From Octopus bimaculoides (taxonomy: Eukaryota): 64,000 bases of DNA. Numbering within the stretch: the first letter of the stretch is position 1; the number at the start of each line of letters is the position of its first letter. This document shows, in pieces, positions 7,930 to 55,409 of the stretch. The stretch is taken from assembly GCF_001194135.2 (NCBI RefSeq), contig NC_068981.1, positions 86,354,129 through 86,418,128 on the forward strand, read 5' to 3'. The notes under the pieces are model-generated. The model saw only the letters and a list, made by a program, of their open reading frames with translations. It did no database searches and was not told the origin of the DNA. The position numbers and the translations under genes are program-made.

Positions 7930-9158
7930 GTGAGATATATTCAAGAGATATTTGTTGATAAAAATAATGGAAATTCTGTTAAATTATGATAGTAACCATA
8001 ACCAGCAAAATTCTTCTAGTTATTTTTTTGGTTATTTAGCATATTTTGATTTGGTGTACTAATCCTTTGAGTGAATGAATATTTTTTCATCTTATAGAAT
8101 TAAATTTAAAAAAAAAATTTTTTTATCCCCCCCCCNNNNNNNNNNNNNNNNNNNNNNNNNNNNNNNNNNNNNNNNNNNNNNNNNNNNNNNNNNNNNNNNN
8201 NNNNNNNNNNNNNNNNNNNNNNCCCCCCCCCCACACACACACAATCACACACAGCTGCTCTTTTAGTCACAATTTTGACTTGGTACTTATCTTATATTCT
8301 CTTATTTGATAAAAAATATAATGAAATTATAATACTTTTGGTCACATTTAGATATAAAATCAAATGTATAGTTTAATTATGATTATGCAAAAACAAATGA
8401 ATTAAAGCTTTGTTTACACTAAAATAAATTTATTATAATTAACTAATTTTATGCTTAGTCAAATTTGATAAGAGAAAGCTTAGTAAATGCAAGAAATATG
8501 CATATGTATGTATGTGTGTGTAAACGATTAAATATAAAATTGCATATATCTAATTCTAGTAAAAAAAAAAATACAATTGTATATTGAAACTATCAACTGA
8601 CTAATTAATGAAACTATGTATAGTAATGAAGTCTATCTTGTGACAGATGTAACATTGTAATATAAATAGAAAGTTTTGTTGGAAATAAATACTTGCAAAA
8701 AACAAGAAAAAAGCCATTGCTAGTATTACAATGATCACACGACAAATTTCTTTTGATACGGTAATGATTATAATTGTTTGACAATTTAGATAATGTTGGG
8801 AAAGCAGTTACAGAAATCACAACATATTCCTTTCCCCTGCCTTCCAGCCAAATTTTAATGTTCAGATGTATGTAACTTCAACATTTAAAAACATTGGTCC
8901 ATAACTTTTTTTTTTTTTTGGCCAAATATTCAGTATTTGACTTTCAGGAATTTCCAAGTTATTAAGAATATATATAAAAATTAAAATTAAATAAAATCAC
9001 TTTTCAAATTGAGTTTAAGAGTGAACCACTTGAATTGACTGAAAAGCAAAAATATAACCTCCATTTTTCTTGACCTTTATTTATGTTAATTCAAATTAAA
9101 TACAAATATCCTAATAGTATTTTAGAATATTTTTCTTCCCTTTTTTTTTTCTCATTAG

Positions 9159-24343: not shown

Positions 24344-24767
24344 AGCTATCAAAGATTATTCACTCCAACTCGTAACATTATATATTTTCTTTCTCTGGTT
24401 TAAGGAAGGATGACTGAAGCTTTGGTCTATGATGTGCATCTATACTGAAGTAGCAGATGGATTTGTTGACATAAAAGGTTTACTTATAATGTCGAAGACT
24501 ATTAGTTACAGACACACATAGAAACATGTATCACACTTATTCACATGAAGGCCACACTCTGTGAAGCTTGAAGTGATAAATTAGGCTGGATTTCACAACA
24601 TGACATATCCCTCTTCTTAATTTTACTTAATCTCTTCATTGTACCAGAATCTGATATATGTGTTTGTAACTGTATGTCTGTCTATATATTTGTTTTAATC
24701 AATAATTAGTGTTTTAAGTAAAGATTTTGTCAAAATTTTTTAACATTTGTGATACTCTGATTATATC

Positions 24768-25183
24768 GTTAAAGAAGTGATTTTAAATTCTCAATCGCAG
24801 AATAATGCTAATAATATAGCCTGAACAGGATAAACTACCCCTAATTTGCAGAGAAAAGTGTAGGTGGCTAGCTGTGGACACGACCTCACATCCCCGTGAT
24901 TACATGTCATGATGCTTTGACCGATTAAGCTAAACTACCCACTACAAATTCCTCTGCAAATTAAGATATATAGATCTCGCTTTATGAGACGCTCTCATAT
25001 GTTAAATTCAAATTACGACAAACGTAAATAAACAAACGAAGTTTGCTTTTAGAAGCGTTGAGATGTCTTTTAGAAAGTTAAAGAAGTGATTTTAAATTCT
25101 CAATCGCAGAATAATGCTAATAATATAGCCTGAACAGGATAAACTACCCCTATTTTGCAGAGAAAAGTGTAGGTGGCTAGCTG
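24768..25183 (-). repeat. About 1.3 tandem copies of a 309 bp tRNA-containing unit with target-site duplication
   Basis: 24768-24874 recurs at 25077-25183 (period 309); flanks ctgattatatc at 24757-24767 and 25181-25191. Confidence 0.9.
24866..24939 (-). pseudogene. Degenerate tRNA-Thr(TGT)-like copy in the same repeat unit
   Basis: Reverse complement of 54610-54683 with B box changed to GGTCGTGT and a mismatch in the anticodon stem. Confidence 0.6.
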
Positions 25184-25253
25184 ATTATATCATTTTAATG
25201 TTCTGCATCAGTTTGAAGTCATTATTTATTTGTATTTTAATTGCTCTTTCCAG

Positions 25254-27167
25254 AATATCCATACAACATGTAAATATCCATCAACCCCAAAAAGTGAAGC
25301 TATCAGATGTGGATGAGGATAAATCAGACACCAAAATCTTTGCCATCAGTAGCGAAGGGGGAAATGTTATTTATCATGTTAGTTCTAAAACCAAAAATAT
25401 CTCAAAGAAGAATGTTGAAGAACTGAAATCTTTTGCTTTAACTGTAATGAACGAAAAAGGATCTGGTGTTTTGACTGCTTCAACTAGAGCACAAATTGAT
25501 ATGCCCTTTGACAGGGTGAACCCAGAGAATCTCAAGCTCCGAATCAATCCCTTTGGTGGATCAGAAAATTCTCTTGATCGGCTTATATTTGATGGATTTG
25601 AGCTTCCACCGCCTGCTCAAAATTTTGATCTAAGAAGCATCCGACGTTTAACAAAGGAAACTTGTTTAAAGGAAGGTATATATTTTGATGAGAAGGACCA
25701 ACTGGATAATACTGATCCCACAGAAGATCAGCCTACTGGAGTTAAGCAAGAGTTAGCTGGCACAGTCACTGATGATCCATCCAATAATGTGGTCACTGTT
25801 GAGGAACCTGCAGGTGAGACTAGTGAAAATATTGTCACTGGTATTCTGGATGATCTTGTTAACAAAGTAACAAGGGAGCCACTGCTTTTGAGCAAACAAG
25901 TCGATATTCCCGACGATTTCTCTCTTCCAGATGGTAAATCTGGCTCCATGTCTAAAGACAGTAGCGTCCTTGATGATGAGGATCTCCTGAATGCTATTGA
26001 TAAGAGAGGGTTAGAGATTGATTCTCCAACTGGCAGTGAATCCGATCTCTCTAGACCATTTGGTAGATCATCAAATAACGTTAGCAACAATTTAGATGAA
26101 AATGAAGAAGAAGCTACAGGTATACACACATTGCATATGCATATACTTCTCTATGTGCAGAAATATGACTGTCAGCAAACTCTCTATGCACTGTCGACCC
26201 TCAAGTCTATGCTTGTAACATGTCCTCGGCTCATGGTTACTGCCATGGCAACAACCAGCATCAGTAACAACAGATTACAACAGTTACCAAAATTGCAGAT
26301 GCTTCTAGCAAGACACCGAAAGTCAGTTTTTGGAAATAACTTCTTTGGAGAATTACCATCTGATGTGATATCAAACTACCGGACAAATATGTACTTAGAA
26401 ATTGTGATTTCTCTTTGCTTATACTTCATCCGATCATACTATCCAAATCTGATGATGAGCAAGTTATCACTTGAAGAACTTCATGGTAACAAAGAGGTTC
26501 ACATACTCAGTGCTGAAATTCTAACCCATCTTGTATCAGAGTTAATCCATATAATGAAAGAAAGTGGTAAAAGTTTTGTCTCTTACATCAGTGATCTTTT
26601 GATGAAATGCAAGCTGCAGAAAGCTATTCTACACTCTGTTTTGGCAAGCGTCTACAATTCACGCCAGATATCAGACAATGTCATGCATCGAGTGAGTTTC
26701 ACTGAAACTATTATATCCTTTAACGAGGACAGCTTAGAACAAAGTGCTAATGAAACTTTTCAAATAAAGCTATTAAATCTGTTGCTTGTGATGATTATGT
26801 TGGAGGGTCATATTCAATTAATTAAGGGAAGTCCAAATCCAACCAGTGGGGATTCAGCAAATAATGATAATACATCTTCATCCGTTGACTGGGATCGCAC
26901 AAAAGTAAACTTTAATCCTTCTCTGTCACGTGTACGTTATAACTCAGGACGGCCCATTGTCCAACAAGGCATGTTTTTGTCTGCAGTTCTTAGCGCGCTC
27001 AAGCAATCTCATCGAGCCCATATGCATCGTCACTGGATTTCCATGGTAACAGCTGCCCTGCCACATATGGGAAAGGCCATGGCTTTGGTTGTTATGAATG
27101 TTGTTTCACAGCTTTGCCGCAACCTTGAATCAATTTCATCTTTGTATACAACTCCAAAGGATGAAAG
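25254..27167 (+). CDS. DOP1: DOP1 exon 10, 1914 nt (ISIQHV...IHTLHMHILLYVQKYD...LCRNLESISSLYTTPKDER), phase 2/2
   Basis: tttccag|a acceptor, ag|gtaagc donor; ORF 25198..27171; IHxLxxHxLLY, LLARHRxSV and QGMFLSAV motifs. Confidence 0.97.
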
Positions 27168-50898: not shown

Positions 50899-50964
50899 CT
50901 AGCAGTCCATGTATTAGGCAGTGAAGTAGTGCTGTATGCGTTCCAGCCTCTTCTACTGTCACAG

Positions 50965-51156
50965 AAGGACTACTTGGGGCCACCCACTGATGTAGGCAAC
51001 AAAACTCCCAATGTTGCAATTCTGGGTCGAATGTTTGTTTCTATGTAACAGACCTTCCACACAAGGACTATTAGGGGTCACCCACTGATGAAGGCAGCAA
51101 AACTCCCAATGTTGCAATTCTGGGTCAAATGTTTATTTCTATGTAACAGACCTTTC
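50965..51156 (+). repeat. Tandem duplication, period 98 bp
   Basis: aaggacta...cacccactgatg.aggca.caaaactcccaatgttgcaattctgggtc...gtaacagacctt at 50965 and 51063. Confidence 0.9.
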
Positions 51157-53957: not shown

Positions 53958-54400
53958 GTACAAAATTCCAATACACTGTCTTCAAAAATATAACTTTTAG
54001 TTCTCTTAGATAATTTTGTTGAAGTTTTTCTTTTTCATAAAACTCATTCATTTATTGTTTATTATTTCATTATCATCATCATAATCATGAAGAAGATGCA
54101 CATTAGCCATATCAAGTTTCACATAAGGAGTGTGATAGTAACAATTCTTCTCAACTTTTAAGGACTTATTAGTTTTCTCCAACTCTGCTATTTTTATCTC
54201 AATTCCAGTATTTCTTTAAAAGCTAATTTGGTGTGGTTTCTAACATTACCTGTGACAGGGTATTTTCTGTTTCCCCCCAACCCATAATTTTCTATCTATG
54301 ATCTTGCAAATTTGGACTGGGGATGGTCTCTTTACAATAATATTTACTTGTAGTGACTTCTATTTTATTGGCAATTTGGACTGAGAAATCTACCAGGGTC

Positions 54401-54789
54401 TAGTTTATCCTGTTCAGGCTATATTATTAGCATTATTCTGCGATTGAGAATTTAAAATCACTTCTTTAATTTTCTAAAAAAGACATCTCAACGCTTCTAA
54501 AAGCAAACTTCGTTTGTTTATTTACGTTTGTTGTAATTTGAATTTAACATATGAGAGCGTCTCATAAAGCAAGATTTATATATCTTAATTTGCAGAGGAA
54601 TTTGTAGTGGGTAGTTTAGCTTAATCGGTCAAAGCATCGTGACATGTAATCACGGGGATGTGAGTTCGAGTCCACAGCTAGCCACCTACACTTTTCTCTG
54701 CAAATTAGGGGTAGTTTATCCTGTTCAGGCTATATTATTAGCATTATTCTGTGATTGAGAATTTAAAATCACTTCTTTAACTTTCTAAA
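54401..54789 (+). repeat. Second insertion of the tRNA-containing unit (about 1.25 copies, period 311), opposite orientation
   Basis: Near-identical reverse complement of 24768-25183; tagtttatcctgttcagg at 54401 and 54712. Confidence 0.9.
54610..54683 (+). tRNA. tRNA-Thr(TGT)-like sequence (probably non-canonical or pseudo) inside a repeat unit
   Basis: Acceptor GGTAGTT/AGCTAGC (one G-G mismatch), D arm GCTT/AAGC, anticodon arm CGTGA-CATGTAA-TCACG, A box TAGCTTAATCGG, B box GTTCGAGTCC. Position 33 is A rather than U and the T stem has a bulge. Confidence 0.6.
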
Positions 54790-55409
54790 TAATAATTATG
54801 TTGAATGTTAGTTTATTATTCTAATAATCTTATTGTGTTCCTTCAGTGCATAACTCAGTCATCATTTAACATCTGTTTTTCCTTGCTGGCATTGGTTGGA
54901 AAGTTTGACATGAACAAAAGAGCCAGAGGGCTTCACCAGGCTCCATGTTTGCTTTGGCATAGTTTCTACATCTGGATGCACTTTCTAATGTTAACCACTT
55001 AGTAGCCTACTGGATGCATTTTACATGGCACCAGCACCAGTGAAGTCACCAGGTACCCACAAAATAAGACCCCTCAACTGAGCGGGGTGTAGACTGGAGA
55101 AAGAAACTATGATGGAGGGTGAAGAACAGGTGTTTTGCTGAAGATGTGAGTGTATGGCTTGCTCACCTGGGAAGTGAGAGAAAGAAAGAGATGTGAGGCC
55201 GAGGTACATGAACATGAGACAGAAAAGGAAATGTACTGAGTGAAAATAGTGTGAAAGATGATTAAAGATAGCAAATGAGTTGGACACAGAGGATATTAGT
55301 TCAGTGTAGTAAGAAGTGAAGAAAATAAAAGATGAGTTATGGGAAAAGGCTTGACTGAGCCTAAATTCTGCTGAGATGGACAAGTCTTCCCAAGCACAGC
55401 ATAACGCCA

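Follow-up and report, generated by a model that had tools for sequence, protein, structure and literature searches.

Position and structure of the insertions

The window, a 64,000-nt stretch of Octopus bimaculoides DNA, contained two copies of a tRNA-bearing repeat, here called A and B. Both lie in introns of the DOP1 gene, 30 kb apart. No further copies were found in the window by blastn at word size 7; a 26-nt match at 9082-9106 was rejected as chance-like when inspected. The exon downstream of copy A was annotated as DOP1 (PF24601, E = 1.4e-123). In RNA contigs the junction with the upstream exon falls at 25250-25254, and copy A therefore ends approximately 62 nt upstream of the exon acceptor, where the earlier note on this DNA had placed it. 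The features of copy A are as follows.

24757..24767, no strand: left target-site duplication (TSD), equal to the right one; the empty site has one copy only (organisms B, C and D)
24768..25180, minus strand: copy A, 413 bp inserted (1.34 units), orientation antisense to DOP1
24768..24837, minus strand: complete-unit body, where the insertion has its 3' end, sense TAGTTTATCC...CACTTCTTTAAC
24838..24865, minus strand: trailer, with the extended-stem 3' arm CTACACTTTTCTCTGCAAATTA, the T4 run and, at 24844, the rare ATT state
24866..24939, minus strand: tRNA-like head, Rfam tRNA 18.5 bits, degraded, B box damaged
24940..24963, minus strand: leader, with the extended-stem 5' arm TAATTTGCAGAGGAATTTGTAG
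24964..25001, minus strand: linker, with the hairpin TATGAGA-GCG-TCTCATA and a TA-rich stretch
25002..25067, minus strand: tail module, sense GACATCTCAACGC...TTTGAATTTAA
25068..25180, minus strand: upstream partial unit of 113 nt, from tRNA position ~66 (CTAGCCACC) through trailer and body
25181..25191, no strand: right TSD; its CAG (tRNA sense) also matches the element

The repeats of copy A (24761-24874 and 25070-25183) are spaced 309 bp apart, which bears out the earlier description of a 309 bp unit followed by a 107 bp repeat of its start. Without the TSD, the repeats cover 24768-24874 and 25077-25183 and differ by a single mismatch (24844 A, 25153 T), with 25153 in the family-majority state. 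The TSD, CTGATTATATC, is identical on both sides over 11 bp. In single-copy contigs of three related organisms (B, C and D), one A separates 24767 from 25194, and this empty site carries a single CTGATTATATC; the identical flanks that had been noticed are therefore a real TSD. The CAG of the right TSD gives the 5' junction a microhomology of 3 nt. In tRNA sense, the 3' end of copy A reads ..CACTTCTTTAAC. The head has three private changes, the majority states differing at 24880, 24884 and 24910. The linker connects the upstream-unit tail with the downstream-unit leader, and its raw-read depth was 10-20% of that of the body.

The features of copy B are as follows.

54402..54787, plus strand: copy B, an insertion of ~386 bp and 1.24 units, sense relative to DOP1; boundaries ambiguous by 2-4 nt
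54401..54481, plus strand: upstream partial unit of about 78 nt, which begins precisely at the 3' base of the extended stem
54482..54548, plus strand: tail module of copy B
54549..54608, plus strand: linker and leader arm
54609..54686, plus strand: tRNA-like head with intact A and B boxes, ARAGORN Thr(TGT), Rfam tRNA 31.9 bits
54687..54789, plus strand: trailer arm and body of the complete unit, ending ..CTTTAACTTTCTA(AA) and merging into the (TAA)n-like target

The repeats of copy B (54401-54478 and 54712-54789) are spaced 311 bp apart with 2 differences. In contigs of organisms B and D, the letters TATAAT stand directly between 54401 and 54788. The target is a (TAA)n-like microsatellite in which a clear TSD is absent: the junctions share at most TCTA (0-4 bp), with a 6-bp difference from the empty allele. 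The TSD of 8-11 bp that had been proposed for the element thus holds for copy A (11 bp) and not for copy B.

Copies A and B are identical at 371 of 381 positions (97%); the second insertion, at 54401-54789, is as near-identical as the earlier note had stated, and it has an empty site of its own. Each unit, of 309 bp in copy A and 311 bp in copy B, is preceded by a partial copy of its 3' part, so that only 1.24-1.34 units are present at the two DOP1 loci. Both copies run through a tail-linker-head junction. Their 3' ends are internal UAA-containing sites (..CTTTAAC and ..TTTCTAAA), which many other family copies also use. In tRNA sense, the 5' start of copy A lies 33-37 nt further 5' than that of copy B, and both 5' ends coincide with margins of the upstream unit's tRNA-like domain, which is strongly structured. 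The copies have no flanking sequence in common.

The contigs of related organisms with empty sites show that copies A and B are lineage-specific insertions. Judged by the family-majority states, each copy has diverged from the common ancestor at ~4 sites (roughly 1%), and both are therefore young. A parent-offspring relationship in either direction was ruled out, because each copy has family sequence that is missing from the other.

The tRNA-like head and its fold

The A and B boxes of a Pol III promoter are readable in the sequence (TAGCTTAATCGG and AGTTCGAGTCC). The Rfam tRNA score is above the gathering score of 29 in copy B and below it in copy A, and ARAGORN made its Thr(TGT) call in copy B only. 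In the UGU reading, position 33 is A and not U. A functional tRNA-Thr gene was rejected on account of the borderline Rfam score, the mismatched acceptor and T-stem pairs, and the thousands of copies. The longest ORF in the 309-bp unit has 47 aa and the unit is non-coding; the 47-aa SINE-derived ORF query gave no protein match.

The leader and trailer arms are 86% complementary and flank the tRNA exactly, enclosing the head in an extended stem of 26 bp. A T4 run lies 7 nt past the head. The 156-nt head domain folds with z = -5.7, and the whole unit is also strongly structured (z = -4.8). A bulge-helix-bulge site was rejected, because a 2x2 internal loop is all that the predicted fold shows. When both strands of the two loci were compared by cmscan with every Rfam family (E <= 10), the tRNA and chance hits were the only matches; hammerhead, twister and similar ribozymes were not detected, and no CUGANGA...GAAA core was visible at either locus. 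Rfam was also run on the whole window at the gathering score, and tRNA alone was found.

An abundant octopus SINE family

The element belongs to a family with thousands of copies in four related organisms. The earlier note had not recognised it as a described family; it is not exotic, and its bulk resembles an ordinary tRNA-headed SINE. An ordinary member has a tRNA-like head, ~100 nt of trailer and body, a 65-nt tail, and then TA/TAA-rich sequence. The word depth was 63,000-740,000 for the family and ~54 for the single-copy flanks, which is about 1,200-13,000 times single copy, with diverse flanks. The raw-read depth was ~1,000 for the family and 0-1 for the flanks. Upstream (5') of the body, most reads run into a diverged tRNA (25165-25182, 'behind'). 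A 27-nt core pattern had 0 matches in metagenome contigs. The family assignment was made independently of Repbase, Dfam and SINEBase, and the family may already bear a name. The octopus tRNA-derived SINEs OR1, OR2 and OK (Ohshima & Okada 1994) are mentioned by citation in PMC4824008. SINEs make up about a tenth of octopus genomes, with nearly all families unclassified (PMC13282606).

Most copies in the four organisms end with ..GAATTTA(A) at the tail end, followed by long, diverse TA/TAA-rich flanks. Loose ends mark this tail 3' end at 24997-25003 ('before') and 54546-54552 ('behind'). An internal 3' end also recurs with diverse flanks, at 25068, 25074 and 25079 ('before', 6-13 contigs each) and at 54789 ('behind', 19 contigs). 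Other copies end at the 3' point of copies A and B or at most ~10 nt beyond it. This agrees with the nearly fixed 3' end and varying 5' start that had been described. At the module boundary 25066/67, some copies have another repeated sequence in front of the tail (25066 'behind', agreement 0.75-0.85), as expected for a tail borrowed from a partner element. Inverted junctions with 5'-truncated copies recur across the family at one point, 25170-25183; no inverted partial copy adjoins copy A or copy B. The rare state AAATTA occurs in the downstream repeats of both copies, and the majority state AAAATA in the upstream repeat of copy A. The linker is the same in copy A, copy B and one contig of organism G. 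The sub-lineage that holds copies A and B has about 44 copies.

The DNA raw reads (X23/X24) came from a linker-ligation library (linker AGGTTCGTCCATCGATCGATGGACGAACCT), and artefacts fill the loose-end tables. The RNA raw reads are unstranded short reads dominated by a few expressed loci and give no strand or end information. One highly expressed locus ends internally at 25071.

Origin of the tandem copies

The earlier note had read the insertions as products of target-primed reverse transcription (TPRT). The empty sites, the TSD of copy A, the recurrent 3' end, the varying 5' ends and the junction microhomology all support this. Our preferred reading, with a probability of a little under one half, is that copies A and B are 5'-truncated TPRT retrocopies of an RNA that spanned more than one head-to-tail unit of the abundant tRNA-derived SINE. 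A SINE does not usually carry ~1.3 head-to-tail units, and a multi-unit template was probably copied here. Of the concatemeric, tandem or circular source suggested before, this reading keeps a template of more than one unit, and nothing points to a circular RNA.

The putative master locus would be a dimer or a short tandem array, with two units joined tail-linker-leader-head, and the tail itself may serve as a favoured target of the next insertion. The template RNA probably starts at the upstream head. Reverse transcription would be primed at internal UAA sites within the downstream unit's body (..CUUUAA|C and ..CUAAA|A) and not at the canonical tail, as the 3' ends partly show; nicked target DNA would be able to prime at such sites. 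The presumed polymerase would copy the downstream head, then the linker, then the tail. Copying would halt at the structured tRNA-like domain of the upstream unit, which the 5'-end positions partly show: the halt point would be tRNA position ~66 in copy A and the 3' base of the 26-bp extended stem in copy B. The cDNA end would then be joined via 2-3 nt of microhomology.

The merging of the (TAA)n-like target of copy B with CTAAA is consistent with this multi-unit reading, as are the stable fold of the 156-nt head domain and the inverted junctions that recur there (25170-25183). The upstream AAAATA of copy A, set against the rare AAATTA downstream in both copies, suggests two non-identical units in the template, and this evidence for two units comes from one site. 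Several observations count against a multi-unit template. No master locus or full-length dimer was seen in the contigs and short-read data. The T4 run 7 nt after the head should end many Pol III transcripts, so read-through over two heads needs explaining. Truncation in the upstream head in 2/2 copies is a high rate for a LINE-mobilised SINE, and the model does not explain why two of ~44 sub-lineage copies lie 30 kb apart. A 1.3-unit copy behind a truncated partial copy also has the textbook look of a Penelope-like insertion (PMC8557442). RTE insertions are marked by a TSD whose first letter is T and which lies about 10 nt past a T stretch (PMC6007223); this signature was not seen at copy A.

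In the main rival reading, template jumping of the kind known from Penelope-like elements would produce the partial tandem afresh whenever a copy is inserted. The reverse transcriptase would copy one RNA to its 5' end and then jump to the 3' region of a second RNA, leaving a pseudo-LTR, in which a 5'-truncated partial unit stands in front of a full one. The candidate partner would be a Penelope-like element (e.g., Naiad) or an R2/R4-type LINE, with the present element as a ribozyme-free, tRNA-SINE-derived dependant. We regard this as possible but somewhat unlikely. The architecture fits the published one, with a truncated partial before a full copy, frequent 5' truncation and variable TSDs, and non-autonomous Penelope-like forms are also inserted head-to-tail; Naiads lack hammerheads and prefer (TA)n targets (PMC8557442). 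Recently active Penelope families (PMC13282606) and Dong-R4 LINEs (PMC9115989) occur in Octopus. Both copies have exactly one complete and one partial unit, and the within-copy repeats show just 1 (copy A) and 2 (copy B) differences, approximately as expected from mutation after insertion. The (TAA)n-like tract at copy B, the TA/TAA-rich family 3' flanks and the recurrent inverted junctions beside 5'-truncated family copies point the same way, although copies A and B themselves have no such inverted neighbour. However, thousands of ordinary, non-tandem copies also contain the body|tail junction found in the tandem; this junction was therefore inherited and not made by a jump, and the linker common to copy A, copy B and the organism G contig suggests an inherited junction as well. 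One site distinguishes the two copy A repeats, and there the downstream repeat agrees with copy B, which would need a jump between two different RNAs. No autonomous element with a similar 3' end was found within the window. An extended form of the idea takes the element as a ribozyme-free, tRNA-bearing counterpart of animal retrozymes: being derived from a SINE, it would depend on a Penelope-like (Naiad-type) or R4-type retroelement, template jumping would regenerate its partial tandem at each insertion, and its leader-trailer stem would set where copying pauses or switches. We consider this form unlikely.

More than one unit would also result if a circular 309-nt RNA were reverse-transcribed by a rolling-circle mechanism, or if circular or satellite DNA were reintegrated. 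The cycle would be retrozyme-like, with tRNA-processing enzymes in place of the hammerhead. The unit size, the GC content of 36%, the tandem form and a TSD of > 4 bp resemble non-LTR retrozymes (PMC7229834), and the unit is strongly folded. But self-cleaving ribozymes were not found on either strand at the threshold given above, the stem has its 2x2 loop in place of a bulge-helix-bulge, the 3' ends cluster at fixed sites and not around a circle, the copy A repeats differ where the downstream state is shared with copy B, and the family consists mostly of linear SINE-like monomers. The RNA reads, in which the earlier note had proposed a search for circRNA-type junctions, held no junction absent from the DNA, a weak test since tandem DNA copies mask back-junctions. 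We find a circular source very improbable. Movement of a SINE-derived satellite fragment at the DNA level, by segmental duplication, Helitron capture or repair-mediated insertion, would account for the tandem structure and for two copies 30 kb apart within one gene, but it fits poorly with the clean 11-bp TSD of copy A and the precise empty sites, with the lack of common flanks, and with the many other copies that have the same 3' end and unrelated flanks; we consider it very improbable. The earlier note had also proposed a TRIM-like element around a Pol III unit. In this remaining reading, the element would be an LTR retrotransposon of the Cassandra/Helenus type that owes its integration to an LTR-element integrase. 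An internal region does lie between direct terminal repeats, and tRNA-bearing TRIMs are known in animals (PMC10886601). However, the repeats start differently (113 nt in copy A, ~78 nt in copy B); they begin with CTAGCC or TAGTTT and end with ..AAC, and TG..CA termini are lacking. The upstream repeat is not followed by a TGG-type primer-binding site (PBS). Copy A has a TSD of 11 bp and copy B none, where Helenus has 4-5 bp, and the two repeats flank the tRNA and do not contain it. The repeat limits, the TSD length and the missing PBS led us to reject this reading, which is hardly credible.

Significance

Copies A and B represent a young, recently active sub-lineage whose copies are not simple monomers and whose ends can be read mechanistically, as probable priming at internal UAA sites and probable truncation at the structured tRNA-like domain. 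If the tandem form is made at insertion, a SINE would be mobilised in the manner of Penelope or R4, and this would help in annotating tandem-looking "unknown" mollusc repeats. The retrozyme-counterpart reading, if true, would link Pol III SINEs to the world of tandem-forming retroelements. The two copies can be used as clean presence/absence markers among closely related octopus species. DOP1 splicing is undisturbed by the 413-bp insertion close to the splice acceptor.

Comparison with known elements

TRIMp3 elements (Cassandra, Helenus and Ajax; PMC10886601) share with the present element a Pol III-type small-RNA module and direct terminal repeats. The LTR termini, PBS and PPT are absent here, the repeat limits vary, and the tRNA is outside the repeats. 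Animal non-LTR retrozymes (PMC7229834; bioRxiv 10.64898/2026.07.22.740005) are likewise non-autonomous, with low-GC units of ~300 bp, TSDs of > 4 bp and tandem copies from dimers upward. They have a type I hammerhead, whereas none was detected in the present element, which has a tRNA-like Pol III module instead.

The resemblance to Penelope-like elements (Naiad and Chlamys MRC1; PMC8557442) includes the full unit behind a 5'-truncated partial unit, the variable TSD, the TA-type microsatellite context and the inverted junctions in the family; a hammerhead is absent, as in Naiads. The present unit is instead built from an ordinary tRNA-SINE, and its RT/GIY-YIG partner is putative.

Dimeric SINEs such as Alu and the mosquito Twin SINE are known. 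Like tRNA-derived SINEs in general, the present element is short, non-coding and very abundant, with an A/B-box head, lineage-specific insertions with variable TSDs, a TA/TAA-rich 3' flank and a tail module apparently common to another repeat. Unlike ordinary SINEs, copies A and B have the head in the middle between direct repeats, spanning a tail-to-head junction, and end at an internal site and not at the tail, and the head is enclosed in a 26-bp leader-trailer stem.

Structure of the two insertions

The two insertions in the DOP1 introns, copies A and B, belong to a SINE sub-lineage that propagates as 5′-truncated head-to-tail composites. Each copy holds about 1.3 units, and the order of the parts in tRNA sense is identical in both.

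Copies A and B and their parts in tRNA sense
Copy A: 24768–25180, minus strand, 413 bp of inserted DNA
Copy B: approximately 54402–54787, plus strand
Part 1: upstream partial unit, 113 nt in copy A and approximately 78 nt in copy B
Part 2: tail module, 65–66 nt, GACATCTCAACGC...TTTGAATTTAA
Part 3: linker, 38 nt, hairpin TATGAGA-GCG-TCTCATA plus a TA-rich stretch
Part 4: leader, 24 nt
Part 5: tRNA-like head, 74–78 nt
Part 6: trailer, 25–28 nt
Part 7: body, 70–78 nt

The copies are 97% identical over 381 aligned bases and repeat with periods of 309 bp (A) and 311 bp (B). The Rfam tRNA score of the head was 31.9 bits in copy B (gathering score 29) and 18.5 bits in copy A, and ARAGORN called Thr(TGT) in copy B only. 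A working tRNA gene was rejected as the identity of the head. A 22-nt inverted repeat, made up of the leader and the trailer, exactly borders the head. This 156-nt domain is predicted to fold into a stem of approximately 26 bp closed by the cloverleaf region (z = −5.7; whole unit, z = −4.8), and a T4 run lies 7 nt 3′ of the head. Rfam detected no hammerhead or other ribozyme at E ≤ 10, so a retrozyme in the strict sense was rejected.

The end of copy A, which is antisense to DOP1, lies approximately 62 nt ahead of an acceptor. The exon starting at 25250–25254 encodes the DOP1 TPR domain (PF24601, E = 1.4e-123), and the DOP1 middle TPR domain was found in an upstream ORF. RNA contigs of 5–8 kb joined the upstream exon at the 25250–25254 acceptor, which is used normally despite the 413-bp insertion. 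This indicates that copy A causes no visible disturbance of splicing.

Several other repeats lie nearby. A different high-copy repeat (54859–55065), 70 bp downstream of copy B, has a word depth of 20,000–100,000 against approximately 50, with many internal deletion variants. Its limits are sharp: one lies at 54859, just before which other copies have (TCA)n, and the second at 55051–55055. It occurs in organisms A–D, and Rfam found no tRNA in it. At 50960–51154, a 98-bp unit is duplicated in tandem (2.0 copies, 91% matches, TRF score 334). Short stretches at 54041–54122 and 24646–24686 show 5–12 times single-copy depth in several organisms and probably consist of low-complexity sequence or fragments of old repeats.

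Insertion sites and age

Empty sites proved that both copies are insertions. The tandem tRNA unit reported at the two loci in the earlier note was confirmed. At the copy A locus, Logan contigs of organisms B, C, and D at single-copy depth joined 24767 to 25194 with one A between. The single CTGATTATATC at this empty site shows that the 11-bp target-site duplication (TSD) of copy A is real. In tRNA sense, its 5′ junction has 3 nt of microhomology, since CAG in the TSD fits the element as well. At the copy B locus, contigs of organisms B and D joined 54401 to 54788 with TATAAT between, which places copy B inside a (TAA)n-like tract (TCT TATAAT AATAATAATT). The junctions of copy B share TCTA at most, and 6 bp differ from the empty allele. 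The 8–11 bp TSD first proposed for the insertions therefore holds for copy A only; copy B lacks even an 8-bp TSD.

In four source-organism runs, the filled allele alone was present. Against the majority states of the family, copies A and B carry approximately 4 private changes each (approximately 1%). Several are CpG transitions, and three of the changes in A fall in the tRNA-like head.

The SINE family

The element reached a summed word depth of 63,000–740,000 in genomic contigs from the source organism, versus approximately 54 for the flanks. Raw-read depth (reads at <1× coverage) was approximately 1000 for the body, 500–600 for the head, 100–190 for the linker, and 0–1 for the flanks. These depths indicate thousands of copies, the exact number varying with the identity cut-off. 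Organisms B, C, and D have the family at equal abundance, and organism E lacks it.

Upstream of the body edge, most reads run into a diverged tRNA (plus-strand consensus ATGAGACTCGAACTCACACCTCCGTGATTA). The commonest 3′ limit is ..TTTGAATTTA(A), some copies extending to ..AACATAT, and in four of four organisms the canonical limit is followed by long, diverse TA/TAA-rich flanks. With a tRNA preceding the body, a canonical 3′ end, and a tail module, most of the family resembles an ordinary SINE made of head, body, and tail. To set it apart from ordinary SINE families was an overstatement. In a minority of copies, a different repeated sequence stands ahead of the tail module, which starts at 25066/25067 in tRNA sense; the plus-strand consensus of the departing flank at 25066 is ATTGTAAGATACAGATAAATAAAATATTTA (agreement 0.75–0.85). 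This is consistent with the tail having been borrowed from a partner element, and the preceding sequence is a candidate for the 3′ UTR of that retroelement.

Ends of the copies

The 3′ end of copies A and B is a recurrent site. Long, diverse flanks begin at 25068, 25074, and 25079 (6–13 contigs each, organisms A and B, narrow reference), and 19 organism B contigs with unrelated flanks end at 54789. One copy ending at the equivalent of 25071 (..CTTTAACTTTCTA) lies within a very highly expressed transcript at another locus, with 943 reads in one RNA run, 278 in another, and the flank CCAGAAGCTGCAATCACTTATAAATTTTTA (agreement 0.99). All limits carry UAA-type motifs (..CTTTAA, ..CTTTAACTTT, ..TTTCTAAA(A), and the canonical ..GAATTTAA), and the junction of copy B blends into its (TAA)n target. 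We infer that short UAA microhomologies allow the nicked target to prime, and that the RNA continued past the point where copying began. Together, the empty sites, the 11-bp TSD of A, and the recurrent 3′ end uphold the original interpretation by reverse transcription.

On the 5′ side, copy A opens with the initial base of the 3′ acceptor strand (tRNA position approximately 66), and the start of copy B coincides with the 3′ base of the extended stem. In the upstream unit, the structured head is probably an obstacle to the reverse transcriptase. One head had already been copied, so passage through a head is possible but not assured. The greater depth of body than head fits many head-less truncated copies.

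Opposite-strand junctions with one side at 25170–25183 (54685–54692 in copy B coordinates) recur in whole-genome contigs and RNA reads; in a linker-ligation DNA library the same joints may come from a CTAG site. In the X23/X24 'GENOMIC OTHER' libraries, a palindromic bridge linker (AGGTTCGTCCATCGATCGATGGACGAACCT) had been ligated at restriction sites, and it gives rise to spurious loose ends and opposite-strand joints. RNA reads of three runs contained opposite-strand joins 24872–24873/24962–24963 and 24984–24985/25178–25179, which could come from expressed inverted copies in head-to-head arrangement or from snap-back artefacts where leader and trailer pair.

Origin of the tandem

The ratio of the linker to this sub-type of head was 0.6–1.3 by word depth across four organisms and 0.2–0.4 in raw reads, and the tail-linker-head junction is also present in one contig of organism G. 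Linker abundance and this contig indicate that the junction is inherited and old. The contig (run X38, 339 nt, the only one, at a low depth of 5.8) covers 54407–54747 at approximately 98% identity in the order body-tail-linker-head-trailer-body, with the majority AAAATA state and copy A-like states elsewhere.

Within a copy, the two repeats show one difference in A and two in B. Those of B are private; that of A is informative. At this site (24844/25153/54705), the downstream repeats of both copies have AAATTA, which makes up only approximately 0.1–0.3% of the family by word depth, and the upstream repeat of A has the majority AAAATA. Copying from one circular or intramolecular template would give identical repeats, unlike those of copy A. 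Judging from this one site, the better fit would be a template whose two units were slightly different, or a pair of distinct RNAs. The circular RNA put forward earlier is not supported. Because the junction is inherited and the repeats of A are non-identical, we favour a multi-unit genomic master, either a dimer or a short array. Such a master may have arisen when one SINE inserted in the TA/TAA-rich tail of a second one.

The AAATTA sub-lineage numbers approximately 44 copies in the source organism by word depth. Copies A and B, both members of it, lie 29.6 kb apart in one gene, far more clustered than expected by chance, and neither gave rise to the other. Their proximity would be explained by a nearby master or by a preference for inserting in this region, and the way the window was selected is a further possibility.

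The TRIM or LTR-like reading, including Helenus and Cassandra, was rejected. The repeat limits are unequal between the copies, TG..CA ends and a PBS are lacking, and the TSD of such elements is 4–5 bp (PMC10886601) versus 11 bp in copy A. The main rival to the multi-unit master is template jumping at each insertion, as described for Penelope-like elements and the non-autonomous forms derived from them, among them the ribozyme-free Naiads, which target (TA)n (PMC8557442). Penelope families and Dong-R4 LINEs were recently active in Octopus (PMC13282606; PMC9115989). We give a tandem-forming SINE of the Penelope or R4 style about one chance in four.
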